The translations under genes and the position numbers were made by a program. Shown one piece after another: positions 3,362-59,623 of a stretch of DNA of 64,000 bases. Under the pieces are notes generated by a model. The model was not told where the DNA came from, did not search any database, and saw only the letters and a program-made list of their open reading frames with translations. Within the stretch, counting starts at the first letter, position 1. Every line of letters starts with the position of its first letter. Source of the DNA: Macrostomum lignano (taxonomy: Eukaryota); contig NIVC01001298.1 of assembly GCA_002269645.1 (NCBI GenBank), positions 124,001 to 188,000 of the forward strand, in the 5' to 3' direction.

Positions 3362-4228
3362 TGTGACGTTGTCAATTTTAGTAGCCCCGTCAGGGGCCGT
3401 TTTAAAATACGTTACCAATCTGTAATATTGTCAATTTAATGGTCCCGTACTCTCACGTCTGCTTAAAGTAGTGACCAAAGAATTTTAAATAACTTGCGTA
3501 CGTTTGTTAGCCTAATTACAGTAGGCGATCGATAATTTCTGTTTTTCTCGCCGGCCAATCGAAAAGCCGGGCAAAAATTATGTTAGCCTGAAATTAAGTT
3601 CTCCGCGCGCACCCACCCCCAGCCCGCTCTTTATCAGTCCTGTCTGGCTGGGGCGCTCGGGGTGTTCCCCTTTCTCCCCTTTCTTTGCCTCTTGCTTTTT
3701 TCTTGTTTACTCGTTAGCCAGCCTTATGCTCCTTAGACCCTTGCCACACCGGCACTCCGTGTTTGCTTGCCTCCTCTCTCCGCCTCACTCCGCCACGGGT
3801 CTAAACCACGCCTCCGCCAAGCCTCAGTCACGCCACCTCAACTGTCTGTACGAGCTCTCGCTGCGAGCACCGCCACCACACGTTCACCGCCATCACACCG
3901 TCACCACCACCACACGTTCACCGCCATCACACCGTCACCATTGCCTCAGGCTCATCGACTCACTCTATCGCCTATTATCTATCTTATTGTTGTGTAGCCG
4001 CCAGTGCATTCCCTACGGATTCAGCAATCACTCTGCCCTATCTCTGTTGACCGCCCAGACGGAACTGATAATAGCAAGCCTAACTATCCTCTCATATTGT
4101 TACAATAAACAAGACTGCGGCCATTGCCCGCATCAGTTGTACTATCATCAAGTGCAACCGCTACAAATTTTGCCTCTGCCGTGTTGTCTTCGTTAATCAT
4201 TTTCGAGTCTGCCGGATAAATCATCACA
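3362..4228 (+). mobile_element. Solo LTR, diverged relative of the LTR family at 24982/49923/53802
   Basis: TG...CA termini (TGTGACGTTGTCA...TCATCACA), 5-bp TSD ATCCC at 3357-3361 and 4229-4233; shares TGTGACGTTGTCA start, GATCGATAATTT...TCTCGCC.GCCAAT and CAAGTGC..CCGCTACA with the reverse complement of the other family members. Confidence 0.85.
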
Positions 4229-4390
4229 ATCCCACTCGTAAATGTGTATAGTTTTATAGCCCCCATACTCTAGAAAATTTCGATATTTGCATTGAAAAAA
4301 AAATGTCAATCCTTGACCGATTCCGGAATTATTTCGCTCCGTTAAAAACCCTGCTTCCGCCATATTGTAAATTGGATAAATACTCACAAC

Positions 4391-4495
4391 ATGAAAGAGG
4401 CGATTGTCTTGGTGACTTGCTCGGCCCCTACTACTTCAAAGCATCCTCTCAATATGGTTTCTGACGAAGCCGAGGTCAAGCAAGACTTCTATAAG
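4391..4495 (+). other. Candidate first exon of a host transcript
   Basis: Open frame MKEAIVLVTCSAPTTSKHPLNMVSDEAEVKQDFYK ends at a strong donor AAG|GTAAGT (4496); YY1-like CCGCCATATT about 30 bp upstream; no convincing downstream exon. Confidence 0.3.
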
Positions 4496-6377: not shown

Positions 6378-7376
6378 TGTTACAGGGGTCTTGGGGGAGG
6401 GAAGTTATCCTATTGCTGACACCAATTCTGTTGTAGGGTGAGGTCGAGGGTTATTGGGAATTTTCAGGGTTTTCTTAGAATTTGGGGCGAACTGCGCAAT
6501 TTATACTACTAACAAGAATAAGCCGTAGGTTGCTCCTAGTGGCGTGGTGTGTCCAAGCGGCAAGACACAGTTTCTATTCTCAGTCCGGGAAATATAGATG
6601 GGAGAGGGGAATTAAAGGCTTCGCGATGGATCGGAGTTGCCTGGGAAAGCGTACTAATGGGGAATTTCTAAATACTAATAGGGAATGCTGACAGCATTAG
6701 ATAAGAAGGCAATCTGCCTAATGAATGTGGGAAATTTCGACTAGGAAGGGTTGGGATTGGGAGCGGGGATGCCGGGGGGGGGGGGCAGACTGTACGTCTA
6801 AGAGAATAAGGCTGTACACCTGAGCAGACAGACTGTCCACTAAAAGGGGGGAGGGGCAGAAGCGGCGGGCGCCAGTTCTGCTGGGAGAAGGGAAAGAGAC
6901 AAAACTCGGGGGGGGGGCAGGACTGAACGTCCCTGGGAAAGGGGGAAGAAGTTTTAAACACTTCTAACTGTACAAGCTTCGCAGGGGGAAAGGCGGAACG
7001 CCTTTAAATGACTAAGACGGAGCTATTTTTAGAACAGTGTTCAGTTACAACCGCTAAATAACTAGGCTAGTGGAGGTCTCAGCGAACAAAGCAGTTCAGC
7101 AGAGAGGAAGCGAGCTTTTCTTTTCTCAATTTATTTTCTTGCTTATATAGGATTTGCTAACAAATGGCGGACGCATTTTAACTAATAAAACACTAGATTA
7201 TACGGTAGGCTACTAATTGAAACTAATAATTGCTACTAATGACATAAAAAATATTTATTTATATAGGCACAATAATTTCTTGTAGTTTTTAGAAAAATAG
7301 TCGTATTATACGTGAAATCAGTAGGCAAAATAGACAAAAATAGGCAAAGTAGGCAAAATAATAGGCAACTGTTACA
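6378..7376 (-). repeat. Gypsy 3' LTR
   Basis: Direct repeat of 14882-15875 with scattered substitutions; on the minus strand it is preceded by the purine-biased tract AAGCCAGGAAGGCCAGT (7377-7393, probable PPT). Confidence 0.95.
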
Positions 7377-7538
7377 ACTGGCCTTCCTGGCTTGATAAAT
7401 TTAAATATAGTGAGAATTTTCAAAAATGATACATAGAATAGCAATGATAGAACAAATGGAATAATGTGTATATTTGCAAAAAAACGAGAATAATGGAAGC
7501 TAATAAAATTGCAGAATAAATGTTCATCAGCAATATAA

Positions 7539-8568
7539 CTAATTCAAATTGAGTTTGCTCGGCAGCCGATGCTGATGGGGCCAGCCACATTCTTGGCCTA
7601 GCCAGCAAATCTCGATCAGCAAGCTTTGCTCATTGTAGTGGCGCGGACCGCGGTGGAGATCTGTCAGTGCGTAGTGGGCCGCACGCCACCAGGCAGCAAC
7701 AGCGTGCATTGGCTGCAGACGGCGAAGATTATGCAGCACTGGCCGCAGCGTCTCGCGTTGAGGGAATTCGCGGCCATCTCGGAATCGGCCAGCGTGAATG
7801 AAATACAGCTTGATCGCTATAACCATACGGCGATAATCGGCGCGTTGGGCCTCTGCCAGACTCTCGATAGCCTGCGTAAAGTTTCCGCCAATCTCCCGCA
7901 GGGGTTGGTCCTGTCTCAAATCCAGCCATCAGAGGTGGTATGCTGGAGTCCAACAGTTCCATCTTGATAGGCGGGACTAGGCGGGGACGCGGTTGGTTTA
8001 TCAGTCGAACCCCATAAGTCGATGGCGGGGTGACTAATGGTTGCTCGGGCTGCTGCTTAGGCGGAGACCTGGATCGGGATCGATGCTTCTGCGATGTTGA
8101 CGAAGGGCGAGGCCCAAGTCTCTGGCGGATGGCTGGCCGGGGTGCTTCACTAGTCGTTAACACGATAGCAGATCTGGCATCAGAGGGCTGGCGCTGTATG
8201 GCGGTTGGGGGGATGGTGACAGGGGCATCAGCATGGCGTCGGAGCAATTTAACTCGCTCTTCTGATCGACGGGAGACTGAATCGGCCGGCGATTGGCGAT
8301 TGGTGATCGGCGATTGACGATCAGGGGCGACCAATGGCGGGTGGGCATCTGAGGTAGCTGACGACGAGTGCGCGTCAGAGGTGGACGGCTGCGGCGGGCG
8401 AGTCACAACTGAGGCGATGCGAGGCTTAGGACCTGGCTTGCTTGGCCTTGTGGGCTGGCGCTCAGGGATGGGCAAATCACTGTCTGATTCCTCGTCGAAT
8501 TCACAGTCATTAGAGTCGCTGAGACGAAGGTTGTCCTCCAGCTGCTTAAGACTCTCTTCTGAATACAT
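7539..8568 (-). pseudogene. Extra ORF between integrase and 3' LTR (unknown function, one frameshift near 7920-7990)
   Basis: 279-aa acidic/Pro/Ser-rich ORF 7729-8568 overlaps a helical-looking frame 7539-7919; no signal peptide or TM segment. Confidence 0.6.
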
Positions 8569-8939
8569 TGGGAATCTGATTGCTTAATCAGCGCAGGGTA
8601 TAAAGATCACTTAGATAGTAAAAATTTAAAAGTCGGGCTTGACAGTATTAATTAGCGAGAAGTGGGAATTTTGGAGAGCAGAAGGCTTGGGATCTGATTG
8701 TGCAATGGCCTAAAAATGCTTATATTTACTGACTATTGTTCACAGACAAGGGAGGTCCTCTTTTTTTCGTGACCCACCTCATTTTCTACGCTCTTTGGGC
8801 TCTAGTTTCTTTGTCGATCGATAATTTGAGGGGTTCTTTGTGCATAGCTAGGGTCTGGGCGAGGGCTTCTTGTGTTCAAAATTTGGGTCTGCCGGGCGAA
8901 GGGGGACGGCGAGGGAGGGGTAGAAAGGCGTAGACGGGC

Positions 8940-9630
8940 TTAATATTCTAGATTGCGCAAGAATCTTACTGCTAATAGTAGGCGGTCTAGATGACAGTTG
9001 CAACGCTGTTTATTTTGGGGTGGGGGCCTTAAATTGTAGGGGTGACAACGTGGGGGTTCGGGATCTCGCGGGACAGGAGAGGGGGGTCGGGGCTGAGGGA
9101 TCTCTTCGTTTGGGGCCTCACTCTCTGACTCATCGGTCATTTCATTCTCTTCCTCTGTTTGGGCTTCACTCCATTCTTCTGGCTGGATTTCATTGTCTTC
9201 TTCTTCTAACTCTTCGTTCTCTGCTTCTCTAATTTGGCATCTCCAATTAATTTCTTCCTCATCAGATTCTTCTTCAGATTCAACTGGTTCGGGCAGGATT
9301 AATTTTTGGGAATTTTGGAGGGGTTGGCCTTCCTTAATTACAGGTTGTCTCTTAGGTTTAGTAGAGACGGGAATTGAAGCGGGAGTGGGAACGGGAGCGG
9401 GATTAGAGGCGGAATCAAGGGCATCTCGCTGGTCTTCCTTAGTGATTCGCTCTGCGGTAGAATTTGGGACTGGGGTTAGATTGTCTCGATGCATGAGCAT
9501 TTCTTTTCCTACTAATTCTCCTTCTTCTTCTTTCTGGACTTTGAAAACCACTTCTGATAGTTGGGCTAAAACTCTAAAGGCGGATCTCTTCTTTCGGTGG
9601 AACTTGTGGGATTCTTCGCTATCTAGCTAG
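8940..9630 (-). pseudogene. Gypsy integrase C-terminal region (frameshifted from pol)
   Basis: FRVLAQLSEVVFKVQ...MLMHRDNL resembles the GPF/Y-adjacent IN tail, followed by an acidic/Pro-rich tail. Confidence 0.75.
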
Positions 9631-9655
9631 GGGTTATTAATCAGTGCAAGGCAAC

Positions 9656-12550
9656 CTATAGGGATTCTAGGGGTAGTTTGTTAGTTTCAGCGGCGACTTG
9701 TCTTTTCTCTACTACTTTTTCCAACTTCTTCTTGACTATCTTATGAGCTTCCTCTAATCTTTCGGCATGCTTAGTAATGTAGGCGGGATAGTCAGCGTGT
9801 TCTGCTGTACTTCTGATCTGGGTGTCTAAAGGTAAGGTGGCTTCTCTGCCAAATAACAGGAAGTGAGGGGAAAAACCTATGGTTGAATTGGGGCTGGTGC
9901 GGACTGGTACTAAGGCTGCGGGAATTAATAAATCCCAATCACCATGATCCTTATTGATCAGACAGGTGATGATTGACTTGACTTGCTTATTGAAACGTTC
10001 AATTAGTCCATTAGATTGGGCATGGTAGGGGGTAGTGAAGGTGTGGCAAATATTATAAAGTTCGCAAAAAGCTTTAAATTGTTTACTAACGAAAGTTTTT
10101 CCATTGTCTGTGTGGATCCAGGTGGGCTGTCCATATTCTGCTACTATCCGTTCAAGTAGTATCTTAATAACTGTGTCTGATTTTTGGTTTCTAATGGGAA
10201 AAGCGAAGGGGTATCTAGTTGTACTGTCAACAACTGTCAGGACATATTTATGACCTCGTTTGCTTTCTTTAGAAATTGGACCGATAATATCTATGTGCAG
10301 GCGGCTAAATGCTTCGCCAATGGGGAATGACTGGACTGGGGCCTGGACAAAGTGTCCTTTCTTGCTCTCAAGGCAGGGGATGCACTCAGCAATTAATTGC
10401 TCAACTGAGGTGCTCAGTCCAGGTTGCCAAAATCTTTCTCGGATCCTCTGGAGCGTCTTATCTCTTCCTAGATGTCCTGCGAGGGGGCTGCAGTGAAGGT
10501 CAGTAAAGACTGCTTTATCTAAGGATGGGGGCAAAACAATTTTGGTTTTTTCGTCTTCAGTAATTGTTAATAATTCGTTATTGATTTTCATCAGCGCATA
10601 ATGCTTACTAATCTTTTCTGGCATGTCCGGTGATTTGGGAAATTGGCTCAATTTCTGGGCCTTAGCTTCTAATAAAGCTTTAATGATGGGGTCAGCAACT
10701 TGGGCTTCTATAATCTGTTCCTTCTTTAGGGGACTGGGGAGGTAGTCAGTTAATAGTTTCTCACACTTTCCTGTCTCTTCTTCTCTTTCATCTACTTCTC
10801 TACCTGAGACAATTAGCTTTGTCCTAGAGTTGGGACATTCAGGCTGGGTCTCGCTTTCTGTCAGGGCTTCAGGTGACTGGGACATGGGGTTGTCCTTAGT
10901 TTCAGCAGGAACACTCTCATCTCTCAGGGGAACAGGGGTCAATTTCTCAACTTTCTCAGGGATTGGCTCAGTTCTCTCAAAATTTTCTTCAGATGCTTCA
11001 GGAGGTTCAGGGATCGCTTCAGCAGGCTCATTGGCTGCGTCAGGGACTTCAGAAACTTCAGGTGCTGTTTCAGCAAGTTCAGGGGCTGCTTCAGGGGATA
11101 CTTCAGGGGCTTCAGCTATCTCAGCTGGTCTTCTCGACAATCCGTCAGCATTGGAATGTTTAGCGCCGCTACTGTGTTCAATGTCGAACCTGAATTCGTT
11201 CAGACGCTCTATCCATCTACCTAGGATTCCGGTTGCTTCAGTTTGTCTCATGAGCCAAATTATCGCTTTATGATCAGTTTGGGCTAAGAATTTCTTGCCG
11301 ATCAGATAAAATCTGAAATGCCTCATAGCGTCGACAAGAGCTAACAATTCTTTCCGAGTAATGGGGTATCGTTTCTCTGATTCCTTCATCGCTCTACTAA
11401 AATAGGCTATTGGTTGCTCTATGCCATCACTCTGGATTTGGCCAAGGCATGCGCCAATCCTGTCATCACTGGTATCTGTGTCGAGCACCATCTTCACATT
11501 CTCATCTTTGACATATTCGGGGTAGGCTAATACTTCAGTGGACATCATTCGCTGCTTCAGGGACTCAAAGGCTTCGTCATGCACTTTGCTCCACTTAGAT
11601 TGGAAATTCTGGACTCCTTTTCGAGTTAATTGGAATAGGGGGTGAGCCACTTCAGCATAATTCTTCACAAATCGGCAATAATAATTGCATAGGCCAAGAA
11701 AACTGCGTAATTCTTTTACATCTTTGGGACGGGGCCAAGTTTGGATTGCTTCAATCTTCATCTTGTCTGTTTGAATGCCTTGTCGGCCAATCACATGTCC
11801 AAGATATTTCAACTTGTGATGGAAAAGATTGCACTTTTTGGGTCTCAACTTCAGACCTGCAGCAATTAGTCGCTTAAACACTTCTCTTAGGTGTTCTAAA
11901 TGTTTGGCAAAAGTTTGGGAGTAGGCGATTATGTCATCGATATAGGACATGGCGAACTTATGTTGGATTCCTAATAGGACTAAATTCATTAGGCGTTGGA
12001 AGGTTCTGGGGGCATTGGAAAGTCCTTGGGCCATTACTTGGTATTCAAATTGGCCTCTAGTTAGGGTGGAGAAGGTGGTTCGATGTTTGTCTTCTTCTTT
12101 GATGGGGACTTGCCAGTATCCTGAGTTTAAATCAAGGCTGCTAAAGTATTGGCTACCAGTTAGGTGGGAGAAGGTCTCTTGGATATTGGGGAGGGGGTAG
12201 GGGTAATAATTAACTCTTGAGTTGAGCACGCGGAAATCGCTCACGATTCTAATAGAACCGTCTTTCTTGGGGACAATTACTAGGGGGGTGGAGTAGGTTG
12301 AGTAGCAGGGTCTAATTAGGTTTTTGGCTAACATATCGTCTAATTGGGCGTCAACTTGCTTTTGCAAGTATGGGGGGATGCGTCTAGCTGGGATTCTAAC
12401 TGGGGTAGGGTCTTTGATAGAGATTTGGTGGGTTACTAAGTGTGTCAGGCCCATGTCTAATTCATTCTGGGAAAAGGCTTCACGGTTTTCTTTCATTAAG
12501 TCGATGACTGCTTTTCGCTGTTCATCCGACAGTTCAGGGCCAAGGCTCAC
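9656..12550 (-). CDS. pol: Gypsy pol: reverse transcriptase, RNase H, integrase (964 aa open segment)
   Basis: RT motifs LDLNSGYWQV, MAQGLSNAPRTFQ, YIDDII, YLGH; RNase H DTS...ELLA...TDH...NADGLSR; IN HHCC (LHCSPLAGH...CIPC) and D-D-E (IDIIGP, TDNG, IERFN). Confidence 0.97.
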   Translation of the reverse strand: MSLGPELSDEQRKAVIDLMKENREAFSQNELDMGLTHLVTHQISIKDPTPVRIPARRIPPYLQKQVDAQLDDMLAKNLIRPCYSTYSTPLVIVPKKDGSIRIVSDFRVLNSRVNYYPYPLPNIQETFSHLTGSQYFSSLDLNSGYWQVPIKEEDKHRTTFSTLTRGQFEYQVMAQGLSNAPRTFQRLMNLVLLGIQHKFAMSYIDDIIAYSQTFAKHLEHLREVFKRLIAAGLKLRPKKCNLFHHKLKYLGHVIGRQGIQTDKMKIEAIQTWPRPKDVKELRSFLGLCNYYCRFVKNYAEVAHPLFQLTRKGVQNFQSKWSKVHDEAFESLKQRMMSTEVLAYPEYVKDENVKMVLDTDTSDDRIGACLGQIQSDGIEQPIAYFSRAMKESEKRYPITRKELLALVDAMRHFRFYLIGKKFLAQTDHKAIIWLMRQTEATGILGRWIERLNEFRFDIEHSSGAKHSNADGLSRRPAEIAEAPEVSPEAAPELAETAPEVSEVPDAANEPAEAIPEPPEASEENFERTEPIPEKVEKLTPVPLRDESVPAETKDNPMSQSPEALTESETQPECPNSRTKLIVSGREVDEREEETGKCEKLLTDYLPSPLKKEQIIEAQVADPIIKALLEAKAQKLSQFPKSPDMPEKISKHYALMKINNELLTITEDEKTKIVLPPSLDKAVFTDLHCSPLAGHLGRDKTLQRIRERFWQPGLSTSVEQLIAECIPCLESKKGHFVQAPVQSFPIGEAFSRLHIDIIGPISKESKRGHKYVLTVVDSTTRYPFAFPIRNQKSDTVIKILLERIVAEYGQPTWIHTDNGKTFVSKQFKAFCELYNICHTFTTPYHAQSNGLIERFNKQVKSIITCLINKDHGDWDLLIPAALVPVRTSPNSTIGFSPHFLLFGREATLPLDTQIRSTAEHADYPAYITKHAERLEEAHKIVKKKLEKVVEKRQVAAETNKLPLESL

Positions 12551-12569
12551 TTCATCAATCCAGGAATCT

Positions 12570-13622
12570 TCAGTACATTGAGTCTGGTTGACTTTTGCAG
12601 GGGTTGGGGTTGGGAGTTGGGGTTTGCCAATAGGTCAGGTCTTTAGCTTTCATGGGTCTGGCTAGGCCAATTAGGGAGGTTTTTGTTAAATTCACGTCTA
12701 CTGGGTGACGGTTAATAATTTCAACAATTCCTTTGCCTTCTTTCATGGTTACTAAGGTCGGAACCATTTCTAATGAGAAATCACAGGTTTGGATAGTATC
12801 GTCAATGGCTTCAATGGTCGTGGGAGTGCCATAATTCGATTCACAATTCTTGGCTAGCTTCACGGGTATTCGGAAGGCACTATTAGCTGGGATGATTACT
12901 CTTTCTTGAGTATAAACTCAACAAACTTTCACAGGTAGGCGGGTATACTGCATGGGTATACAGGTACCTTCATTGAGCACTAGCATTCCTTTGGCTAGCT
13001 GAATGCTTTCACATTGGGATAGGAAAAATTCCATACCTAGAATATTGTCACAATCATGTCGGCATAGGAGGAAATCAACTTCGATTTGGATATCGCCAAA
13101 TTTCACTTGGGCGGATACTTCTCCTAATTGAACTGGGGTACCGTCAAATGTACTAATGCTTTTGCTAGTGTCTCGGATTTGATCAGAAAGGATTAGCTTA
13201 GACCAGGTTGAGCGGCTCAGGAAATTATTTCTGGCGCCTGTGTCTAGCAAGAAATCAATCGATTCTTTCTGGATATCGCTGACTATTACAGCTTCATAGC
13301 CTTCTAGCTTGGTTAGGTCGATTTGGGATGGGGAATTGGGTTTTAGCTTTTGTCGCTTCTTTGAGCGGGTTTCAGCACTGAATAAAGCATTATTGGTTTT
13401 AATCGCATGGGATACATGGGGTGCAAGTGCAGTGGGTACACAGGGTGCGGACACATGATGTACAAAAGCTTTGGTCGAATTGGTTACATGAGAGGCGGTC
13501 GCATGGGGGGAATTGTACACATGAGGGTCATGGGGGGCATTTGGCATAACATCGTCGGCATCATCAAAGGCAAGAAGTGAAAAATTATTGGGGGAGACAG
13601 ATATCACATTATTTACAGGCAT
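12570..13622 (-). pseudogene. Gypsy aspartic protease and post-protease linker (broken)
   Basis: FLLDTGARNNF active-site motif and DNILGMEFF; a stop and frame change separate 12918-13622 from 12570-12863. Confidence 0.85.
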
Positions 13623-13699
13623 TGGCTGTACATGGGAGGTTTTGCGAGGATAGCGGAAACCATACTGGGGAGGTTGCCAGTATTTTGGTTGGGGGGCAT

Positions 13700-14791
13700 T
13701 TTTGAATGATGAAGAGGCCGGAGAGTAAGCAGAATTTTGGCCTGAGGGGCGTGGCCTCTTAACTCGACCCTGGCTTCTCAGTTTCCCGACTTCTGGGAGT
13801 CACAGGGGTTGCGGAACTTCAGCGGCTCATATCTTGGGTTAGGGGGCTGATGCTCATTCCTTCTTGGGGGTTCACGTCTTGGCGGCTGGTTCATCAGCTG
13901 AGGCCTGTACTGCTGCTGAGGTTGCGGTCTGTACTGCTGCTAGGGTGGCTGTCTGTACTGCTGCTGGGGAGGCTGTCTGTACAGCTGAAGGTTTGGCTGT
14001 CTGTGCTGCTGAGGAGGTGGCTGCCTATACTGTTGCTGGGGGAACACCTGAGATGGCGGGGCGCATTGCGCTGTTTTGGCCAGTTGTTTCTGCAGGTTCT
14101 GAATAAGCCTTTCTTGGCAGTCAATCTTAGTCTGCTGGTCAATGATCAATTGATCAGTTCTGACCTTATTCTCCTCTTTCTTATCTTTAGTCACTCGGAT
14201 TCCACCTTTGTGGGACATCTGGTAAGCAGCTTCAATTCTGCGCAGCATTCTACGGGCGGCTTGGAGACTAGCAGGTTGGGCAAAAATGAGCTTTTCATGG
14301 GTGTCGGGAGGGGTTCTCACACCTTTGATGAACTGTTCAACCAGTTCTTCCTCTCTTTGCTCAGCATCCATGTTCAGGAATGCGCGGGAGGCTAATTCAA
14401 TCAGGGCATTGGCAAAACTGTCAGTGGATTCATTTCTGCCTTGGCAGTGATTCCTAAACTCTTCACGGAATTCGGCGGAGCTACCCACTTTTCCAAATCT
14501 TTCGATTAGTCTTTCTTTGAACTCTTCATAGGGGAGATTAGCTGGGAAGTTGAGGCGTTAAACTGCTGCAAACGCAGTACTCAGGTCTAAATTGGTAAGC
14601 AGTTCTTGCTTCCGGTTTTCTTCTTCTATGCCTTCATTTTCACATCTCTGGTCAAATGCGGTAAGCCAGATTCTAATATCTTGGCTGGGAAGGTACTTCT
14701 GGATCTTCACATGTCTGAGGGGACCTAATTCTAAGCGGTTGCGGAGCTCTTCAGCTAAGAGTCCTAGGGCTTTGTTAATTCCTGCAGCCAT
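13700..14791 (-). pseudogene. gag: Gypsy gag (interrupted)
   Basis: MAAGINKALG...IRIWLTAF...; EEFRNHCQGRNESTDSFANALIELASRAF...EQFIKG is Gypsy capsid-like; Q/P-rich repeats PPQQQYRQ; stops and frameshifts. Confidence 0.85.
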
Positions 14792-14863
14792 TATACTTCA
14801 GGGATAGGGGATGGAGAATTATACTGGGGTTTGAGTGCGCGTTTCACCAGATTCAAATCCTTT

Positions 14864-14876
14864 ACCGCTGCCACCA
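14864..14876 (-). promoter_or_regulatory. Primer-binding site complementary to tRNA-Leu 3' end
   Basis: Minus strand TGGTGGCAGCGGT, 5 nt after the 5' LTR; matches ...ACCGCTGCCACCA of metazoan tRNA-Leu. Confidence 0.85.
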
Positions 14877-14881
14877 AATTC

Positions 14882-15875: not shown

Positions 15876-15894
15876 AAAGTAAAATAAATGGATA

Positions 15895-19836: not shown

Positions 19837-20053
19837 TCAGTCATCCCTCCTACAATCCTCGCAAAAGTACATGTCAGGTAGGTCGTTGTAGTCAAAACCA
19901 ATACAGTAAAGGTGGAACCAGTCATCACATCCATCACAGGCAGTCATTTCTATCTCTTGGCGCTCCGGTGGCAGGCTTGGGATGATGCAGTCTGGCGCCT
20001 TGCACTTGTTCCAGTCGCCGCCATGTCGTCCTTCATCCTGTTGTCGGCGGCCG

Positions 20054-20089
<36 letters not shown>

Positions 20090-22664: not shown

Positions 22665-22994
22665 ATCTGAAACTGTGAATTAGCAAAAATTACAGTAGCA
22701 CATAGTACATAAACTATACTATGTACTACTGTAATTCTTGCTTTTTCTCAACACTTGTACAACATAGAATTGTGAGTAAACTTGAGTGCTTTACTTTTGC
22801 CATGTGCAAGGTGCAAAGTGCAAGGATTTACACTGCTAACAAATCCATTGGAACTTACAAAATTTTTAATAGTTAAATAATAAAATCATTTTGTTTTCAT
22901 TGTGCTATACCTCATCATGCACAATACAATTGTTGCTATAAATTTGCAAGACTCCAAACCAGAATGTTTTTGTCTGCTTCGAAAAATAGAAAAT

Positions 22995-40680: not shown

Positions 40681-40689
40681 CAATTTTTT

Positions 40690-49922: not shown

Positions 49923-50745
49923 TGTCACGTTATTTGATGTTGGCCGTGACCCTTAAAAGGGCCGTTTTAGTCCCAAAATAAGTTGAAGTCAACGTAGGCG
50001 AAGTGGATGGTGTAGCGGAGCACTTGGCGATAAAGGCAGGAACTGCCGTAGTTGTCTTTATTGTTAATATCAGTATTAAGTTTGGTTGTTACTGGCAATA
50101 AACAGACTATAGCTTTCTGGGCACTGGCGGCTGCAACAATGGGTTGAATATAATTTGGATATGAAGTCAAGTGGCAGGCGAATGACACAATGGCGATGTG
50201 ACGTGAGCAGTGGCTATGAGCACCGTGAAGGCAGTGAAACGTAGTGGCGAGTTTGGCGTCGGTCGTGGCGTGAGACAGTCAAGTAAGCGTGTGAGCAGGC
50301 TGGCCCAGGCAGAGGGGCCGTGGTGAGAAATAAGGAGGCTCGAGGCAGCCAGACAAGAACAGAAAAACACACACAAGGCCAAGGACAGGCCGGGAGGAAG
50401 AGAGAAGCACAGATAAGGACGGGAGTGAGGAGTGCCCGCCGCCAGGCGGGGGTTTAATAAAGGAGCGCAGAGGAGGGGTAGCGCGAAGCGCGAGTGGTTT
50501 TCATTGGCTGGCGAGAGAACTTAAAATTATCGATCGTGCCAATTTTATACGGTCGCGAGAGAGGGTAGCAAAATACACAGTGAGTTAGAAATTGCCACAA
50601 AATCGTTGGGCATTACTACAAGTAAACGTCGCAATAAACGAATGGAAAAGTTTAGTTGAAACGGTGAAACTGAAGGGTTGAATGACTATGGAGAACAGCA
50701 GTCCAACGGCCCTTTTCGGGACCACCTTAAACTGACAACGTCACA
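49923..50745 (-). repeat. 3' LTR
   Basis: TGTCACG...CGTCACA; PPT GGAAGGGAGGCGGG (minus) at 50746-50759. Confidence 0.95.
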
Positions 50746-51229
50746 CCCGCCTCCCTTCCGAAAAAGGATAGGGTCGCGCAAAAAGAAAACCAACACGCGG
50801 GGTGACGGCAAGAAAAACACAACGTGACCGCAGCGTATGAAATTATAGCAGAGCGAGCTACAGGGAGCTTGAGTAGTATGTAGGAGTATATGATTACCGG
50901 ACAAAATTACAAAGTTCCAAAGGCTACAGACTATTACGAGAGCAGAATATTACAGGGCAGTAGAACGCGGTGAGCACGAGCAATACAACATGGTGGTGTT
51001 ACAAAAACAGAACAAAATATGACAGTGGTTACGGGAAGTAGTGCACGACGGGGCGCGCGGCGCGCGCGAACACAAAAACGACAAAGGACGCGCAGAAGTG
51101 ATACGATGGATGAGGCAAACACAGAACAATGGTGACAGATGGATGAGGCAAAGGATGCAGAGCAGAGGCACGGCACAGAGACACAGTCCGGACAACTGCG
51201 GGCAACGACGACAAGCGTCAAGGGCGGCG

Positions 51230-51690
51230 GGACACGGCGCGGCGCGCCAAGGCGGGAGGAAACCGGCGCAGGAGCGCCCAAGGCGGAAGACGCGGCGCAG
51301 CGCGCCAAGGCAGGAGACGGCGCAGGAGCGCCCAAGGCAGGAGACGCGGCGCGGCGCGCCAAGGCAGAAAACGGCGCAGCGCGCCAAGGCAAAGACGGCG
51401 CAGCGCGCCCAAGGCGGAGACGGCGCAGCGCGCCAAGGCGGGAGACGGCGCAGCGCGCCAGGCGGAGAACGGCGCAGCGCGCCAGGCGGAGAACGGCGCA
51501 GCGCGCCAAGGCAGAGAACGGCGCGGCGCGCCAGGCAGAAGACGGCGCCACGCGCCAAGGCAGAGGATGGCGCCACGCGCCAAAGGCAGAGGATGGCGCT
51601 ACGCGCCAAAGGCAGAGGATGGCGCTACGCGCCAAAGGCAGAGGATGGCGCCACGCGCCAAAGGCAGAGGATGGCGCTACGCGCCAAAGG
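51230..51690. repeat. GC-rich 20-27-bp degenerate tandem repeat (GGCGCAGCGCGCCAAGGCAGAGA-like)
   Basis: About 20 copies; partial second array at ~55110-55300. Confidence 0.9.
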
Positions 51691-52420
51691 CAGAGAGAGC
51701 GTGCGTGCGGTGTGTGTGTGTGTGTAGTGCTTACTTTTACCCCACAAATATTATCTCTAATAGTTATACCATGAAATTTGCGAAATTTAATGATAAACTG
51801 CAGCTGATTTTTGAAGTAAACGACGCTGACCTGATCAGCCAGCTGCGCAGCGTTACGCTGCACTCGTCAATGGGCTGAGCAGCGAACTAAGCTAGCTATA
51901 TCCCTATATACATTTTTTCCAGTAGTTTTCAATGGTTGTTTTTTCAATTTTTATTTTCTTTTTGAGTTATTTATGAGCTTTATTCGTCGCCAGTAGTTAT
52001 GCTTTAATTACCAACCGTCTATTGTACATTCCATGGCTTTAGGGTATTAACGTCAGAGATGACGCACTTATTCATTTCATCGACTTTGGCAACACCGAAC
52101 GGGTGCCATTGCTATCAATTATTTTAATCATTTTTGTCCTTGCTATGCTATACTATTACTGCTATATCATGCTATTACTATTTACTTAGGCTTACAGGGG
52201 CATACGCGCCCTAGTGTATTGTATAGACTACGGCAATGACGATGCAGGCGGAGAACTACTGCAATATATTTTTGACAACTTTTATATTTATAATATTCAT
52301 GTCATAATTATATTTCGACCATAAAGTGCTTTATGAATTAATTTTTAGTTTACTTTACTTTTGAATTAACTAGTTTGGCTTTTGGCTTGTGTTTGTGGTC
52401 TGTGGCTGGCAAATGCCGCA

Positions 52421-52720
52421 GTGACCTGTGGCCGGCAGGTGCCACAGGAGGTAGTTTTACGCCTTGCCCGGGGCGTGAGCTTGCGGTCTACAGGTGCCGC
52501 GGTGACCTGTGGCCGGCAGGTGCCACAGGAGGTAGTTTTACGCCTTGCCCGGGGCGTGAGCTTGCGGTCTACAGGTGCCGCGGTGACCTGTGGCCGGCAG
52601 GTGCCACAGGAGGTAGTTTTACGCCTTGCCCGGGGCGTGAGCTTGCGGTCTACAGGTGCCGCGGTGACCTGTGGCCGGCAGGTGCCACAGGAGGTAGTTT
52701 TACGCCTTGCCCGGGGCGTG
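52421..52720. repeat. 81-bp tandem repeat x ~3.7
   Basis: Units start at 52421, 52502, 52583, 52664; in frame as TPRARRKTTSCGTCRPQVTAAPVDRKL on the minus strand. Confidence 0.95.
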
Positions 52721-53424
52721 GGCAAACTAATGCTTGCCACCCTACAGCTGGAGCAGGCCGGACACCTGGCACGCCCGGTACCTAACGGGTGGGCAGATGG
52801 GGCGCCCATAGCTGGGTCTGGGTTCAGTGGCTGGGGCTGGTGGATTAACTGCCTGTGCGGCGACTGGGTCCGCCACAGGCTCGGGAGGCGCCATGCCGAA
52901 GTCTTCCCCGTTGCCGGACATTGTGCGAGATGAAGCTCAGGCAGGAGCCCGAGTGAGGCGAACGGGGCAACCACGAGTGAGAGTAAGGTTCCAGAAAGAA
53001 CGAATTGGGGTTGATGACGCGAGAGAGACGAGAGAGATTGCGTCCTACTAACAAAAATACGTGCCTGACAGGGGCAAACCACAAAAAGCCTAGTATAGGG
53101 GAGAGTCCTATCACGCAAACCACCCAGACTAACTGTCAGGCAATAGTCCCTACAAACAATCAGCGCACAGCGTAACCTGGCGTGGCTTGGCACACACATA
53201 CAGCGGAGCTATCTTGGCAGAGCGTAAGCTCGAGCTCAACGCAGTTGACAGCGCGCGTTGCTCAGGGCGACGACCAGCGACGACCCGCGGCGACGAGCAA
53301 AGACCAGCCGGGCAGTCAGGACCCCTGGGCCTGACGTGGCACAGGCTCTTGCAGCCTTGCGGACCGAACCTCAGGCGTGGCACAGGCTCTCGCAGCCTTG
53401 CGGACCGAACCTCAGGCGTGGCAC

Positions 53425-53795
53425 AGGCAGGCAGGTGCTCAGTCACGAGCCGGCAGAGCTGAGCAGAAGTCTCGCTGGTGGCTTGTGCTTGGTTGCAAAC
53501 TGGCAGGACTGAGACGAAGTCTTGATGGCGCTGATTACGAGCTGGCAGGGCTGAGTAGGCGTCTCGGTGGTGCTTAGTTTCGAACGTGTTGATGTTGAGC
53601 AGAATCTCAGTGGCGCTTAGTTGCGAACCGGCAGTGCTGAGCTTAGTCTTGGTGGTGCTTAGTTTCGAACGTGTTGATGTTGAGCAGAATCTCAGTGGCG
53701 CTTAGTTGCGAACCGGCAGTGCTGAGCTTGGTCTCGGTGGCACTGATTTAGTTGCGAGCCGGCAGTGCTGAGCAGGAGTCTCGGTGGGACCTCCA
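53425..53795 (-). repeat. Array of ~43-bp units (85-bp dimers) each carrying TCTC(G/A)GTGG, ending in the true PBS
   Basis: GTCT(C/T)GGTGG at 53561, 53646, 53731, 53778 with ATCTCAGTGG half-way between; more degenerate units upstream. Confidence 0.85.
53779..53795 (-). promoter_or_regulatory. Primer-binding site complementary to tRNA-Gln 3' end
   Basis: Plus strand TCTCGGTGGGACCTCCA equals the 3' 17 nt of metazoan tRNA-Gln including CCA; 6 nt from the LTR. Confidence 0.9.
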
Positions 53796-53801
53796 AAATT
53801 A

Positions 53802-54624
53802 TGTCACGTTATTTGATGTTGGCCGTGACCCTTAAAAGGGCCGTTTTAGTCCCAAAATAAGTTGAAGTCAACGTAGGCGAAGTGGATGGTGTAGCGGAGC
53901 ACTTGGCGATAAAGGCAGGAACTGCCGTAGTTGTCTTTATTGTTAATATCAGTATTAAGTTTGGTTGTTACTGGCAATAAACAGACTATAGCTTTCTGGG
54001 CACTGGCGGCTGCAACAATGGGTTGAATATAATTTGGATATGAAGTCAAGTGGCAGGCGAATGACTCAATGGCGATGTGACGTGAGCAGTGGCTATGAGC
54101 ACCGTGAAGGCAGTGAAACGTAGTGGCGAGTTTGGCGTCGGTCGTGGCGTGAGACAGTCAAGTAAGTGTGTGAGCAGGCTGGCCCAGGCAGAGGGGCCGT
54201 GGTGAGAAATAAGGAGGCTCGAGGCAGCCAGACAAGAACAGAAAAACACACACAAGGCCAAGGACAGGCCGGGAGGAAGAGAGAAGCACAGATAAGGACG
54301 GGAGTGAGGAGTGCCCGCCGCCAGGCGGGGGTTTAATAAAGGAGCGCAGAGGAGGGGTAGCGCGAAGCACGAGTGGTTTTCATTGGCTGGCGAGAGAACT
54401 TAAAATTATCGATCGTGCCAATTTTATACGGTCGCGAGAGAGGGTAGCAAAATACACAGTGAGTTAGAAATTGCCACAAAATCGTTGGGCATTACTACAA
54501 GTAAACGTCGCAATAAACGAATGGAAAAGTTTAGTTGAAACGGTGAAACTGAAGGGTTGAATGACTATGGAGAACAGCAGTCCAACGGCCCTTTTCGGGA
54601 CCACCTTAAACTGACAACGTCACA
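53802..54624 (-). repeat. Shared (5'/3') LTR
   Basis: Has a PBS on one side and a PPT (54625-54638) on the other. Confidence 0.95.
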
Positions 54625-55300
54625 CCCGCCTCCCTTCCGAAAAAAGATAGGGTCGCGCAAAAAGAAAACCAACACGCGGGGTGACGGCAAGAAAAACACA
54701 ACGTGACCGCAGCGTATGAAATTATAGCAGAGCGAGCTACAGGGAGCTTGAGTAGTATGTAGGAGTATATGATTACCGGACAAAATTACAAAGTTCCAAA
54801 GGCTACAGACTATTACGGGAGCAGAATATTACAGGGCAGTAGAACGCGGTGAGCACGAGCAATACAACATGGTGGTGTTACAAAAACAGAACAAAATATG
54901 ACAGTGGTTACGGGAAGTAGTGCACGACGGGGCGCGCGGCGCGCGCGAACACAAAAACGACAAAGGACGCGCAGAAGTGATACGATGGATGAGGCAAACA
55001 CAGAACAATGGTGACAGATGGATGAGGCAAAGGATGCAGAGCAGAGGCACGGCACAGAGACACAGTCCGGACAACTGCGGGCAACGACGACAAGCGTCAA
55101 GGGCGGCGGGACACGGCGCGGCGCGCCAAGGCGGGAGGAAACCGGCGCAGGAGCGCCCAAGGCGGAAGACGCGGCGCAGCGCGCCAAGGCAGGAGACGGC
55201 GCAGGAGCGCCCAAGGCAGGAGACGCGGCGCGGCGCGCCAAGGCAGAAAACGGCGCAGCGCGCCAAGGCAAAGACGGCGCAGCGCGCCCAAGGCGGAGAC

Positions 55301-56990
55301 TTGTGTAGCCATGTTCCTGCAGGAAATCGACAATATCCTTCTTCACAGTAACAGTCATTCTGTGATGTATTAAAAAGCGTTTCTTCAGCCACGTTGCTGC
55401 GAAGAGAACAATCTAGGAGAGTAGGATTAAATTTTTCCTAAAATAATCGTACTTGTCTGGCCCTGGAGTCAGAAGCATTAATTAGTTCCCACTGAAATCC
55501 TAGTTCTAACTTAAATGTATTATCTGCGATAATAAAATAAACTGTCGCTTACAGATTTCAAGTAGCTTCTGGAAGTTTATTGAGTTAGCCATGTGAGACA
55601 AAAACTGGCGACGGTTGTAATGTGTCATCTCTTTGACCTGTGGTCCATACCGTCGAATTATAGACCACAGAGATTCGCACGATTCTCTGTCCGTCAGACC
55701 AGCGCCGTTGGTATAGCGAATTCCCTGCTTTATTTGGCACCGGTAGACATGGCCGTAGGCATGAAAAGCCGGCACGGCAAACTGCAGTCGATCTACGGCG
55801 AAATGACCCTTGAGCTTACAGGCCACATCGTATGACACGATTAGAGGAACCGACGATGGGACATCTTCAAGAGCTTGAGCCACCATAGTGCATGCATAGT
55901 TCAGCCTGTATTTGTTTATATAAAAGACAAAATATTAGTGAACTCGTAATAAACAATTAAAATCATTGTTCTTAACCCTAAGTAGTACCTAAACGGGATA
56001 TGTCAAGTGATTTGGGGTAATACTCAGAACCTTTTCTCGACTAACTTATCTTCCAGAATATTATCAAATCCGTTCATTTGCCCAAAATTCACTATCCTAA
56101 AATCCCTACACATACAAGTACACATTGGATTAAATTTGCATCAACTGAAATACTTCTCTCCTGGCGTCGTCATATCAGCGAGGTATCGAATGCAACCGTG
56201 GCGGCACGAACTACAGAAATAACCGAAGACATCGAGACGCTGGATGTCCGATGAAGAACTGAGCGCCTGGCCTCGACCACCAGCAGTCCAGTTGGAGCAG
56301 TGTTTTTCTGTGGGCTCAGTATTTTTATGAAAATCAACATCTAAAAAGATGTCTGTTTTTGGAGCCGAAGAAAGGTCCTTGCCGCCTGCGGTTTTTCGAT
56401 GAGGAATTCCAAAGCAACCGTCGAGTAGAAGAAAACATGGTTGACTTTCGTTGCAAGCAGGCTGCTACAAAGGGTTTATTAAAAAAGTAAATAAGGGATG
56501 ACTAAGGCAACTGCTCTCGTGTATATGAAATGAAATACGCTTATATAAGTCATTTGGCACATAGCATGCAGGGCAGTCCACCTTTGCTGACCAACGTATG
56601 TCATCGACCAAGTGCTCGAACGCTCTGAATGCACCGAATGTGTTAAGATGTCGGTAAAGTTTGATCTGAAAAGCATTCCAATTTTTACTCAACAAACCCT
56701 AGAATGGAAATTTGACTTCAGGAAAGTAACTTTAACTTGTTGGAACTAGACCCCGGCTACTCTACTTACAGGTCCGAAATTCCACATAGGATTTTTATGC
56801 AGCTCGAGTGCTTTACATATAGAGAACAAAGACGCGCTAGTACATTGTCTTAGCGATTCCATGAGGAGTAAGAGACGAATAGAAGCAGCCTTAGGCACGT
56901 GGGCACGCTCACGGACTGCTTGCAATGGCCAGTAGCCGAGGTGTAACATAGCCTGAGAGATTGTTGTGCATCTGCACATATGTAGCTTGA
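55301..56990 (-). pseudogene. KDZ (Kyakuja-Dileera-Zisupton) transposase relic, intron-containing, 3'-truncated
   Basis: CRC...LHLGYWP (CxC-like), CPAC, DVFGYFCSSCRHG...DMTTPGEKY, YDVACK, VPAFHAYGHVYRCQ...GAGLTDRESCESLWS. Confidence 0.85.
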
Positions 56991-58246
56991 CGTTTAGTTC
57001 TTCAGCTGCAAAAGGAATCGTATAAAAAATAGGTAAATTTTAACTCCGATTTTGCAGAAAAGGCGGCTTTTCCCTTGATTATATTCTTAGGGAGGCTGTC
57101 GTATGTTACATAACTATAACTATATTTACTTGCTAGCATTATTGCAGAGACCTTCTATCAATTTAGAGGCTTTAACCCAATTAGGATTGAAAAATGGAAT
57201 TAAGGATCGCCGTACAGGTTTTACGAGTTACAACTTTTACAGTCAACATTTTACAGTCAATACAATAAATAGCCTAAAAACACAGTGTTCAGGGTAAAAT
57301 AAACTTCACAGTCATATTTTATATTGCTTTCAAAGTAAAACAAGTCAAACAATAGGCTTGTTTATGAGATGTCGATCTTACCGTCTTCAGTAAAGAATAC
57401 AGCATCAATCAAATATGAACCATCGTGTTCCTCAATGTTCCTCAACCATCGTGAACACTCAATGTGACACATCAGAGTATCAGAGGTACGTTGAAAATAT
57501 TTTACCTATAAATAAAATGAAGCATTGCATAGTTTACATTAAATTTTATTTAGCGTTATTTAACCCTTATAAACCTACATTCCATTGCTCGACTACATGC
57601 AGAGGATTGTGCCTGTGCTGGTAGATCATGCAGTTTGTGCAAACCTCTCTTAGGCCACACATGTTGCATCGATGTACGATCACAGGAGAGACACTTGAAT
57701 CGTTTTGATTTTTTTCCATTAGATTAAAAATAAATGTAACAATATAATTTATCGGTTTCAATGTACTTCTGACAGGTTATTGGGAGTTTAAAAATGTTCA
57801 ATTTCAGCATGACGAAAAATTCATCATTCCTTATGTGCTGTCTCGAAATCAATGCCCATTTATCAACATGTGCAAGATATACTCTGAATAAATACAAATA
57901 TGGGGGGCATTTACAATCGGTGTGTTTTAACATTTCTGCTCTATATTCATCGTAAGCTTTATCAATGTCTACAATTACTTTGGACTTTCGAGAATGGGTT
58001 TTATTTTGAGAAACTGATATAATAGAATCATAGTACTTTTGTGGTAGAACATTTCGTACATTTGGGTTATTAGCTTCCAATTTTTCTAAGAAAATTTTGG
58101 CTATGTAGTTTTCATTTTAAGGTCATAAACTTTTTTTAAATTGTTTGAAACTTGCATGACCTTTTTCTTTACATTATGACTCAGAGTTGGTCTTTGGCAG
58201 AGTAGGCAATTTAGTAAAAGATAAGGTGGATCTTCTGAATAAAATA

Positions 58247-59623
58247 CAGGGTGTCCCATAAGTAAATTTACAACTCGTTTCGTGAATAACTTTGTGATTA
58301 ATGCTTGGATCCCCACCAGAGTTTAGCATAAGAAAATATATAGAAAAGGGATTTTTTGACACCAAAAGCATGTTCATACGTTAAAAAATACAGTCCGTTC
58401 AGGGTCCTTCGATGTGGCCACCGCCGTTTGTAAGGCAGGCCTCCAGCCGCCGCGGAAAGTCCAGCAGGGCTTTGGTAAGCGTCATAGGCGAAATCTGGGC
58501 CACTTCGTCTGAGATCCTCTGTCGGAGCTCATCGATTGTGCGCGGCTGCGTTGCGTAGACTCTGCTTCAGATCGCCCCACAACCAGTAATCCAAGGGCGT
58601 TAGGTCAGGAGAACGAGCAGGCCAGCTAATCGGACCACCTCGCCCGATCCATTGGTTGGGAAAGATGAAGTCCAGCCAATGCCGCACGGCCCGCGACCAG
58701 TGAGTGGGAGCACCGTCCTGCTGGAAGAAAATGTTCCCCGTGTTGAATTTCTCGATCCGCTGCAGTTGAGGCAGAAGTCATTGGCGCAACATCTCCAGGT
58801 AACTGTCGCCCGTGACTGTGTCTTCGAAGACGTATGGTCCGATCAGTCCACCGGACCAAACTCCCATCCATACGACAATCTTTGGCGATTGCAGCGGCTT
58901 CGTGGCGGTTTGCGATGGGTTGTCGGTTGACCAGTAGACGCAGTTGTGGCGGTTTACATGACCGCTCAGGTGAAACACAGCTTCGTCTGAGAAGAGGAGC
59001 TGATTGAGAAAGCTGTCGTCGTCTGAGATCACCTCCAGCATCTCCTCTGCGAAGGCACGGCGGGCGGCTAGGTCTTCCTCAAACAGTTCATTCAGGATTT
59101 GAAGGCGGTATGGGTGCATCATTTTGTCTTTAAGAATGCTATGGACTGAGGTCTTTAATAAGTCCAGCACGGCACTGGCTCTTCTAACCGAGTTCCCCGG
59201 TGAAACGTCAAAGGCGGACACCACTGCCTCGACGTTCTCATCTGAACGTGAAGTTCGAGGTCGTCCTGGCCTTTTAATGTCGCCCAAGTCGCCATCGATA
59301 GCGTTAGCATGAATGGCACTGATTGTAGGCCTTGATGGAACCGCCTCATTTTTGCCGAATTCAGCCCGATATCTTCGCAGGACGATGATAGATGACTTCG
59401 TGCATTCGTACCAGGCAGCAATCTTAAATCTTTGTGTGGCTGAGTAGCGAGTTGTCATTGTGTGACAATGAGCTGAAAGTGAAAGTGAAAAAATGAACAT
59501 GCTTTTGGTGTCGAAAAATCCCTTTTCTATATATTTTCCTACGCTAAAATCTGATGGGGATCCAAGCATTAATCACGAAGTTATTCACGAAACAAGTTGT
59601 AAAGTTACTTATGGGACAACCGG
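58247..59623 (-). mobile_element. Tc1/mariner DD41D (rosa/Visitor-type) transposon, 1377 bp
   Basis: ~130-bp TIRs starting CAGGGTGTCCCATAAG; TA duplications at 58245-46 and 59624-25. Confidence 0.95.
58399..59458 (-). pseudogene. DD41D transposase with one TGA (~58778) and one frameshift (~58560)
   Basis: FSDEAVF, QQDGAPTH, WPARSPDLTPLDYWLWG; 41 residues between 2nd and 3rd Asp. Confidence 0.93.

Follow-up and report, generated by a model that had tools for sequence, protein, structure and literature searches.

Why do a dozen unrelated transposons, gathered in one part of the Macrostomum lignano genome, read almost all on the same strand? The question is raised by a 64,000-nucleotide stretch of DNA, analysed here over its full length (the window), in which a nest of transposable elements (TEs) spans about 55 kb; of its dozen unrelated transposons, nearly all are oriented away from a host first exon at its left edge. 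A preliminary description counted 10 of 11 orientable elements on the minus strand and proposed a uni-strand piRNA cluster. We find the orientation bias suggestive, not compelling, and the locus to be of an ordinary kind and a modest candidate.

Composition of the transposon nest

About 70% of the window consists of a nest of no fewer than 12 separate TE insertions, which represent at least six superfamilies. Several of them are marked as separate insertion events by TSDs or TIRs of their own (Gypsy, AAAG; solo LTRs, GTAAG and ATCCC; Sola-like element, GTAT; mariner and DD41D). For every element tested, including the LINE, KDZ and EnSpm elements, and for the exon, the closest relatives come from M. 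lignano. Queries of public assemblies for exact protein matches recovered nothing from this locus.

Among the LTR retroelements, a full-length Ty3/Gypsy element occupies positions 6378-15875 on the minus strand, with TG..CA ends, the TSD AAAG, 1000-nt LTRs that are 96.8% identical and an intact pol ORF of 964 aa; protease, RT, RNase H and integrase follow in pol order, all on the minus strand. The non-autonomous element LTR-B (49923-55300, minus) is bounded by 823-nt LTRs that are 99.6% identical and has a tRNA-Gln PBS left of 53802 and a PPT right of 50745, both reading minus, while an additional partial internal copy at 54625-55300 makes this a pair of tandem units that have one LTR in common. 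Three solo LTRs were also identified. The one at 24982-25781 (minus, TSD GTAAG) is an LTR-B relative that has 82.7% identity to the LTRs of the tRNA-Gln element and lies in the same orientation as they do. A diverged Gypsy-type solo LTR at 29889 to approximately 30850 (minus), nested within the Myb-like gene of a Harbinger element, is co-oriented with the Gypsy LTRs, its first 48 nt matching the beginning of the intact Gypsy LTR at 100% identity and the remainder at 67-76%. The third, a distant LTR-B relative at 3362-4228 with TG..CA ends and the TSD ATCCC, ends 163 bp upstream of the ATG of the exon; it lies on the plus strand as previously described, its ends being inverted relative to those of LTR-B.

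Just outside the range covered by the preliminary description, and upstream of the exon, we observed a 5'-truncated LINE (1690-2502, minus) consisting of the 3' end of ORF2 and a (CAATG)n tail. It was found by tblastn with M. lignano P0054, to which it is 41-76% identical, including the motif RRRRL.LAGH.IR.

The cut-and-paste elements are more varied. A DD34D mariner (15897-17185, minus) has perfect 26-nt TIRs, Pfam matches to Transposase_1, DDE_3 and HTH_48, the DD34D spacing by direct residue count, and TG/TG rather than TA flanks. It is followed by a 7.1-kb element with 26-nt TIRs and the 4-bp TSD GTAT (17736-24878, minus), in which all three long ORFs, one of them with a PHD finger, read minus and tandem repeats of 39, 53 and 178 nt are present; for this Sola-like candidate the TSD is consistent with Sola2, a 4-bp TSD being a trait of that group (PMC3627910). 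The PIF/Harbinger element (27430-31570, ends approximate) has subterminal inverted motifs at about 27.4-31.6 kb and is bidirectional, as had been noted when it was left out of the earlier count: the transposase (27839-28902, DDE_Tnp_4 at 7e-29) is on the plus strand, and a Myb-like gene on the minus strand (31325-31065 and 29885-29379; Myb_DNA-bind_5 at 4.6e-4 and 20.5 bits, just below the cut-off of 21.7) is divided in two by the solo LTR nested in it.

Further to the right, an EnSpm/CACTA-type transposase gene of about 650 aa (46276-44368, minus), with homologues containing DUF4218 and Transposase_21, is interrupted by three frame breaks, and a search around 44368-46276 found no termini, TIRs or TSD. 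The KDZ (Kyakuja-Dileera-Zisupton) transposon at 55311-58209 (minus) encodes a transposase (57671-55311) matching PF18758 at 2e-33 (116 bits, cut-off 26.6) and 38-68% identical to its M. lignano homologues; it is split into several ORFs, its reading frame is cut at 55300 by the adjoining LTR-B with loss of the C-terminus, and no C-terminus was found left of 49923. An inverted copy of the KDZ 5' end at 40333-40666 (plus), 85% identical to 57880-58209 and devoid of a TSD, forms with it a pair of 334-nt inverted arms enclosing both EnSpm and KDZ; this arm may be a piece of a second, plus-oriented KDZ copy, or else the distant TIR of a composite 17.9 kb long. The rightmost element (58241-59629, minus) belongs to the DD41D group of the Tc1/mariner superfamily, with 137-nt TIRs 92% identical, TA flanks and 41 residues, by direct count, between the second and third catalytic D; the Pfam search returned only an HTH (DUF4817), below cut-off.

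The Gypsy relic listed earlier was not recovered, as no RT, protease or integrase signal occurs outside 7.5-14.5 kb. What had been so named may be an unclassified repeat unit with an orphan ORF, present at 35850-39100 (minus) in two diverged copies and recognised from direct repeats (34769-34931 with 36829-36985, and 35202-35331 with 37969-38098), for which we found no homologues and no RT, PR or IN signal.

A host-gene exon at the left edge of the nest

The exon-like sequence at 4391-4495, which had been put forward as the possible start of a plus-strand transcript, is supported as the first coding exon of a host gene. It comprises 35 codons from an ATG, followed by a consensus donor (AAG|GTAAGT), and its translation is 97% identical to residues 1-35 of UniProt A0A1I8GD50, a predicted M. 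lignano protein that diverges from the genomic reading exactly at this donor. The exon was tested because the preliminary description pointed there, and the sensitive short-exon search covered this site. Residues 36-79 of A0A1I8GD50 are encoded nowhere in the window, no partner exon was found within the next 59.5 kb, the flanks hold no conserved ORFs of at least 77 aa, and among 1.84 billion representatives no other protein shares the N-terminus of the exon. The TE nest begins 1.9 kb downstream. Since the exon is on the plus strand, the TE array lies downstream of it and antisense to it by 9:1, and the very case that the preliminary description had named as refuting its proposal, an intron of a plus-strand protein-coding gene, becomes a live one: the array may be an intron, or a downstream part, of such a gene.

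Strand bias of the insertions

Nine of the ten earlier minus-strand calls were borne out (Gypsy, mariner, Sola-like, two solo LTRs, EnSpm, the tRNA-Gln LTR element, KDZ and DD41D), the Gypsy relic not being found, so that the bias is real, if weaker than stated. The arithmetic behind the p value of 0.012 for 10 of 11 holds, but other defensible counts raise it to as much as 0.065 (two-sided binomial p: 10/11, 0.012; 10/12, 0.039; 9/11, 0.065; 9/10, 0.021), and these are raw, single-window values for a locus picked out of many scanned windows. Over the whole window 10 elements are on the minus and 2 on the plus strand. Downstream of the exon, 9 orientable elements are antisense and 1, the Harbinger transposase, is sense (one-sided p = 0.011); antisense orientation is found there for all four LTR-class insertions and for 5 of the 6 DNA transposons. 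By summed length, all listed elements of the window, including two upstream of the exon, amount to about 32.6 kb on the minus and 1.9 kb on the plus strand. The sole sense-oriented LTR (3362-4228) is upstream of the exon and outside the putative unit. Lying between the inverted arms, EnSpm and KDZ may not be independent insertions. AATAAA hexamers number 64 on the plus and 57 on the minus strand, that is, with no plus-strand depletion.

We rate at somewhat under even the probability that these counts reflect chance, i.e. that this is a gene-poor TE nest in a genome with more than 50% repeats, its skew a sampling fluctuation picked post hoc and the exon a bystander, or else part of a duplicated gene that landed beside a TE pile already in place. 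The range of the two-sided p with the choice of count speaks for this, as do the selection of the locus from an unstated number of windows, the dependence of the best p value on a Gypsy relic that could not be verified, the plus-strand Harbinger transposase, the left KDZ arm, which may be a plus-oriented fragment, and the absence of poly(A)-hexamer asymmetry. Moreover, the old parts of the nest (KDZ arms 85% and DD41D TIRs 92% identical) may predate the arrival of the exon, and duplicated sequence makes up 180-312 Mb of the M. lignano genome. Chance accounts less readily for a skew whose direction is the one predicted by an independently supported exon, which is seen in retroelements and DNA transposons alike and which is so pronounced by length.

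Transcription as a possible filter of insertions

The explanation that we favour, and to which we give an about even chance with its piRNA-source version included, is that the bias was made by an orientation filter linked to transcription. Plus-strand transcription from a promoter of the exon would run through the TE array; sense insertions, carrying promoters, splice sites and poly(A) or termination signals that face the way of the host transcript, would be removed, and antisense insertions would be tolerated and accumulate, so that selection rather than chance would underlie the bias. The transcript might be a pre-mRNA in which TEs have enlarged an intron, might arise as a run-on from a gene copy in decay, or might serve as the precursor of piRNAs. 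We favour the filter because the direction of the bias matches the prediction from the strand of the exon in 9 of 10 elements, and because the lone sense LTR sits outside the unit. In mammals, intronic LTRs and other TEs are likewise biased towards antisense, which has been ascribed to termination and splicing signals on the sense strand (PMC1794541, PMC3517506, PMC3088655).

Several points count against such a filter. The first intron would have to span at least 59.5 kb, whereas M. lignano introns average 1.1-1.4 kb (PMC5730564), a more than 40-fold difference. In the public gene model that contains this exon, the intron crossed was presumably much shorter, in which case the present copy of the exon may be a broken duplicate, giving a transcript without selection. 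In introns elsewhere, LTR elements show a strong antisense bias and cut-and-paste elements a weak one, whereas here the bias extends to nearly all DNA transposons, and the AATAAA hexamers are undepleted. In addition, the sample is small, EnSpm and KDZ may be one unit, and the exon was tested only where the preliminary description had pointed.

The bias of the DNA transposons, less well explained by an intron filter, would fit better with the special case in which a plus-strand Pol II transcript from or near 4391-4495 passes through the array and yields antisense piRNAs against six or more TE superfamilies, insertions in antisense being kept as they confer silencing. We consider this version rather unlikely. 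In its favour, the array is TE-dense, multi-family and partly nested, and mixes young elements (LTRs 99.6% and 96.8% identical) with old ones. The flamenco locus has a spliced first exon ahead of its TE array, and here an exon with an ATG and a splice donor marks the 5' edge. Most transposon fragments of flamenco-like loci are opposite to cluster transcription, and the antisense majority found here (9:1 after the exon, 10:2 in the whole window, p = 0.01-0.07) resembles theirs (PMC10643416). The Macrostomum lineage has the necessary pathway, with PIWI proteins, piRNAs, of which those bound to Macpiwi1 are biased towards antisense, and both bidirectional and unidirectional clusters, the latter of up to 93.7 kb (PMC4604429).

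On the other side, the clusters of M. lignano add up to 0.63% of its genome and have a median length of 9.7 kb (PMC4604429), a low prior for one of at least 55 kb, and ping-pong in M. lignano piRNAs lessens the need for an antisense-only source. Several elements here are full-length or nearly so, unlike the fragment mosaic of flamenco, and the bias of Drosophila flam-like loci is driven specifically by Gypsy elements, which is not the case here (PMC10643416). Sequence by itself does not distinguish between a piRNA precursor, an ordinary transcribed unit and chance. Still more doubtful, in our view, is the fullest form of the proposal, in which a free-living flatworm would have a uni-strand piRNA trap of the flamenco kind. 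A host gene, either captured or in decay, would supply its promoter and first exon, and antisense piRNAs against retroelements and five cut-and-paste superfamilies would be produced in neoblasts or germline. If true, the flam architecture would have evolved convergently in an animal other than an arthropod and would extend there to DNA transposons.

Comparison with known systems

The orientation filter invites comparison with the TE-laden introns of human and mouse, in which ERVs, LTRs and L1 show an antisense bias (PMC1794541, PMC3517506, PMC3088655): here too the array follows a 5' exon and its donor and the retained elements are overwhelmingly antisense, and the only sense LTR falls outside the unit. 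In such introns the antisense excess is strongest for LTR and LINE elements; here it is complete for the LTR class in the unit and present also in the DNA transposons. Such introns also have exons on both sides, whereas here the 5' exon is present and residues 36-79 of A0A1I8GD50 are absent from the window, with no 3' exon within 59.5 kb. The locus differs further in the length of its would-be intron, which would be extreme for this genome, in the share of cut-and-paste elements in the bias and in its host, a flatworm; we found no surveys of intronic TE orientation in flatworms in the literature.

With flamenco and flam-like loci it shares a long TE-dense stretch, most insertions directed against one inferred direction of transcription, and a candidate promoter-proximal spliced exon at one end (PMC10643416, PMC10495008). 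Those loci, however, span 227 kb to more than 1 Mb, are dominated by Gypsy/ERV elements with a Gypsy-specific bias and have as their defining feature the production of piRNAs from a single strand in somatic follicle cells (PMC10643416, PMC10495008), whereas this one extends over about 55 kb or more, combines six superfamilies and contains many near-complete copies.

Closest in organism are the unidirectional clusters of M. lignano itself. The 436 piRNA clusters of this species were defined by small RNAs mapped on an older draft assembly (Zhou et al. 2015, PMC4604429), in which they differ from a locus read from its DNA; they resemble it in coming from the same or a close organism and in being TE aggregates, of 10-94 kb and some of them one-stranded, with Macpiwi1 piRNAs that are mostly antisense to TEs (PMC4604429).

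Strand of the elements in the array

Transposable elements (TEs) in the window show a strand skew that is real and statistically modest, in a setting that is an ordinary TE nest anchored to a plus-strand host exon. The DNA is TE-dense animal DNA (GC 32-54%), and the closest relatives of all informative homologies were found in the flatworm Macrostomum lignano, suggesting DNA of this species or one near to it: the EnSpm-like transposase (43% identity overall, at most 56% over segments), the KDZ element (38% overall, at most 68% over segments), a LINE fragment (41-76%) and the host exon. Domains were searched using Pfam on stop-to-stop ORFs of at least 70 aa on both strands, save the plus-strand ORFs within 51.1-53.6 kb, one of which is simple-repeat, and those at 54.2-55.4 kb, near-identical copies of scanned sequence; repeats were mapped by self-BLAST and a repeat finder. 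Among the scanned ORFs the sole plus-strand domain was the Harbinger DDE_Tnp_4, and the minus strand carried the Gypsy protease, RT, RNase H and integrase, the mariner Transposase_1 and HTH_48, KDZ, a PHD finger in the 7.1-kb TIR element and an HTH in DD41D. When 45 unannotated ORFs of at least 77 aa, taken from both strands, were run as a composite homology search, the LINE fragment alone was recovered, with no more host exons or TEs, and tRNA and Rfam scans of the whole window yielded no tRNA genes and no Rfam RNAs.

On the minus strand lie a Ty3/Gypsy element (6378-15875; 1000-nt LTRs 96.8% identical, TSD AAAG), a mariner (15897-17185, perfect 26-nt TIRs), a Sola-like TIR element (17736-24878, TSD GTAT, assigned to the Sola class from TSD and TIRs only), a solo LTR (24982-25781, TSD GTAAG), a Gypsy-type solo LTR (29889 to about 30850), an EnSpm transposase with three frame breaks (46276-44368), the young non-autonomous LTR element LTR-B (49923-55300, LTRs 99.6% identical), a KDZ element with the Pfam KDZ domain (57671-55311), DD41D (58241-59629, 137-nt TIRs) and, beyond the range of the preliminary description, a LINE tail (1690-2502). 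The Gypsy-type solo LTR is nested in Harbinger (about 27.4-31.6 kb), whose transposase reads on the plus strand, and splits its minus-strand Myb-like gene. The orientation of LTR-B could be read directly as minus: TGGAGGTCCCACCGAGA, complementary to the 3' end of tRNA-Gln, lies on the minus strand directly left of 53802, and the polypurine tract GGAAGGGAGGCGGG adjoins the other LTR. The LTR-B family aligns in inverted orientation with the solo LTR at 3362-4228 (TSD ATCCC), which places this solo LTR on the plus strand.

Pfam strands, transposase homology, TIR and LTR structure and the reading of primer-binding site and polypurine tract thus bore out nine of the ten minus-strand calls of the preliminary description, as well as its single plus call (the solo LTR at 3362-4228). 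The tenth, a "Gypsy relic", was not recovered: neither Pfam on ORFs of at least 70 aa on both strands, nor tblastn of 30-40 kb with the proteins of the intact Gypsy, nor scans for the motifs YxDD, DSGA and HHCC detected it, and all that 34.7-39.1 kb contains is a pair of diverged copies of an orphan ORF unit on the minus strand.

Structural features of individual elements

Close, non-nested neighbours (Gypsy and mariner, Sola-like element and solo LTR, KDZ and DD41D) are unrelated elements separated by gaps of 21-103 bp (15876-15896, 24879-24981, 58210-58240), a hint that the same short segments were hit by insertions more than once. A 175-bp MITE-like unit at 1183-1357 has 38-nt terminal inverted repeats, 97% complementary. 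In the intact Gypsy element the end of pol and the 3' LTR are about 2.2 kb apart (7377-9656), and in this interval two extra minus-strand ORFs of 203 and 279 aa, acidic, proline-rich and devoid of Pfam domains, may represent an env-like or accessory gene. The start of the Gypsy LTR is 100% identical to the first 48 nt of the nested solo LTR (29889-29936), the remainder of which is 67-76% identical; this could reflect conservation of the end that integrase binds, or gene conversion acting locally. The Sola-like element carries tandem repeats of three kinds at 22104-24236, namely a 39-nt coding repeat within a 413-aa ORF, a perfect 53-nt unit (x3.1) and a 178-nt satellite (x3.8 at 95%).

LTR-B is laid out as partial internal region, LTR, internal region and LTR, a 1499-nt block (the LTR together with 675 nt of the internal region, polypurine tract included) being duplicated at 99.67% identity, which suggests either unequal recombination or a tandem pair with a shared LTR. 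The interior of LTR-B, 2.4 kb long, consists of non-coding GC-rich minisatellites with 24-27-nt units and an 81-nt unit (x3.8 at 99%). Just left of the KDZ arm, the minus strand at 39298-40029 encodes an intact 243-aa ATG-to-stop ORF that lacks Pfam domains and matched none of 5.8 billion proteins; it is either an orphan gene or an accessory ORF of a TE.

Strength of the strand skew

The ten of eleven elements originally counted on the minus strand correspond to a two-sided binomial p of 0.012. Adding the LINE and scoring Harbinger by its transposase gives 10 of 12 (p = 0.039), and by length about 32.6 kb is oriented minus as against 1.9 kb plus. The count depends further on two inverted arms 17.2 kb apart (40333-40666 and 57880-58209; 334 nt, 85% identical), which flank the EnSpm-type and KDZ-type transposase genes, both CMC-related, together with the nested LTR-B. 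Arms and contents could form a single giant composite or belong to two separate elements: no TSD was found around the arms, no convincing pair of CACTA-type termini with a TSD was detected for EnSpm, and a search left of the LTR-B insertion for KDZ C-terminal homology, which would prove a single 17.9-kb unit, was negative. EnSpm and KDZ are possibly non-independent and the left arm is possibly a plus-oriented fragment; merging the two in the count of twelve leaves 9 of 11 (p = 0.065). With p varying by counting choices, the evidence for a skew beyond chance is suggestive, but the skew was picked after the fact; chance, which would make the locus merely a well-resolved TE nest, has a considerable probability, somewhat short of even.

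A host exon ahead of the array

The preliminary description named 4391-4495 as a possible start of a putative plus-strand transcript, and the stretch was examined as a hypothesis-driven test. It encodes MKEAIVLVTCSAPTTSKHPLNMVSDEAEVKQDFYK on the plus strand, followed by GTAAGT. A search of this peptide against 1.84 billion representative proteins yielded one real match, the 79-aa M. lignano gene model A0A1I8GD50 (UniProt), 97% identical over residues 1-35 and diverging from the genomic reading precisely at the splice donor. Match and donor together identify a host exon on the plus strand that has a usable splice donor and lies 1.9 kb ahead of the TE array, and this link of a host exon to the array is new here. 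The source name of the model is "GLOBIN domain-containing", a weakly founded name to be taken cautiously since Pfam detected no globin domain in it. Residues 36-79 were not found in the whole window, thus the next exon lies more than 59.5 kb away or is missing from this copy.

Within the putative unit downstream of the exon, 9 elements are antisense (minus strand) and 1 is sense (one-sided p = 0.011); the sole sense LTR (3362-4228) lies upstream of the exon, outside this unit. That LTR ends 163 bp 5' of the exon ATG, with an AATAAA near its 3' end, and may serve the putative plus-strand transcript as promoter or 5' UTR.

The exon lends support to the proposed transcript start, and just as much to the case the preliminary description had named as its refutation, a plain intron of a plus-strand protein-coding gene. 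Against such an intron stand the M. lignano averages of 1.1-1.4 kb for introns and 7.5-9.4 kb for genes (PMC5730564), the antisense bias shared by the DNA transposons and, the genome being highly duplicated, the possibility that the exon locus is a broken copy.

Possible transcription-linked orientation and known clusters

We give about an even chance to a transcription-linked filter on TE orientation. If plus-strand transcription from the exon exerts such a filter, a regenerating flatworm offers in this locus a concrete case open to testing, which would show a route by which a gene-derived promoter and a TE pile-up could turn into, or already be, a source of piRNAs from one strand; a skew due to chance would leave only a well-resolved TE nest. 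Under either reading, decisive mapping is made simple by the link to the exon and by the map, which gives boundaries, TSDs, nesting and the relative ages of the elements. Explanations of any other kind appear improbable.

Antisense bias of TEs inside transcribed units is well known; signals on the sense strand for poly(A), termination and splicing are held to cause it (PMC1794541, PMC3517506, PMC3088655). A uni-strand piRNA cluster, a special case within the transcription-linked filter, we regard as rather unlikely; the locus is a reasonable but unproven candidate. The exon fits the transcript start proposed for such a cluster; on the other hand, many elements here are near-complete, and AATAAA, taken as a proxy for plus-strand read-through, shows no strand asymmetry and no plus-strand depletion (64 versus 57). 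Moreover, only 0.63% of the M. lignano genome lies in piRNA clusters, whose median length is 9.7 kb and whose longest example measures 93.7 kb (PMC4604429), which also speaks against one here. Clusters of the flamenco type are shaped by the same orientation filter together with selection for silencing (PMC10643416).
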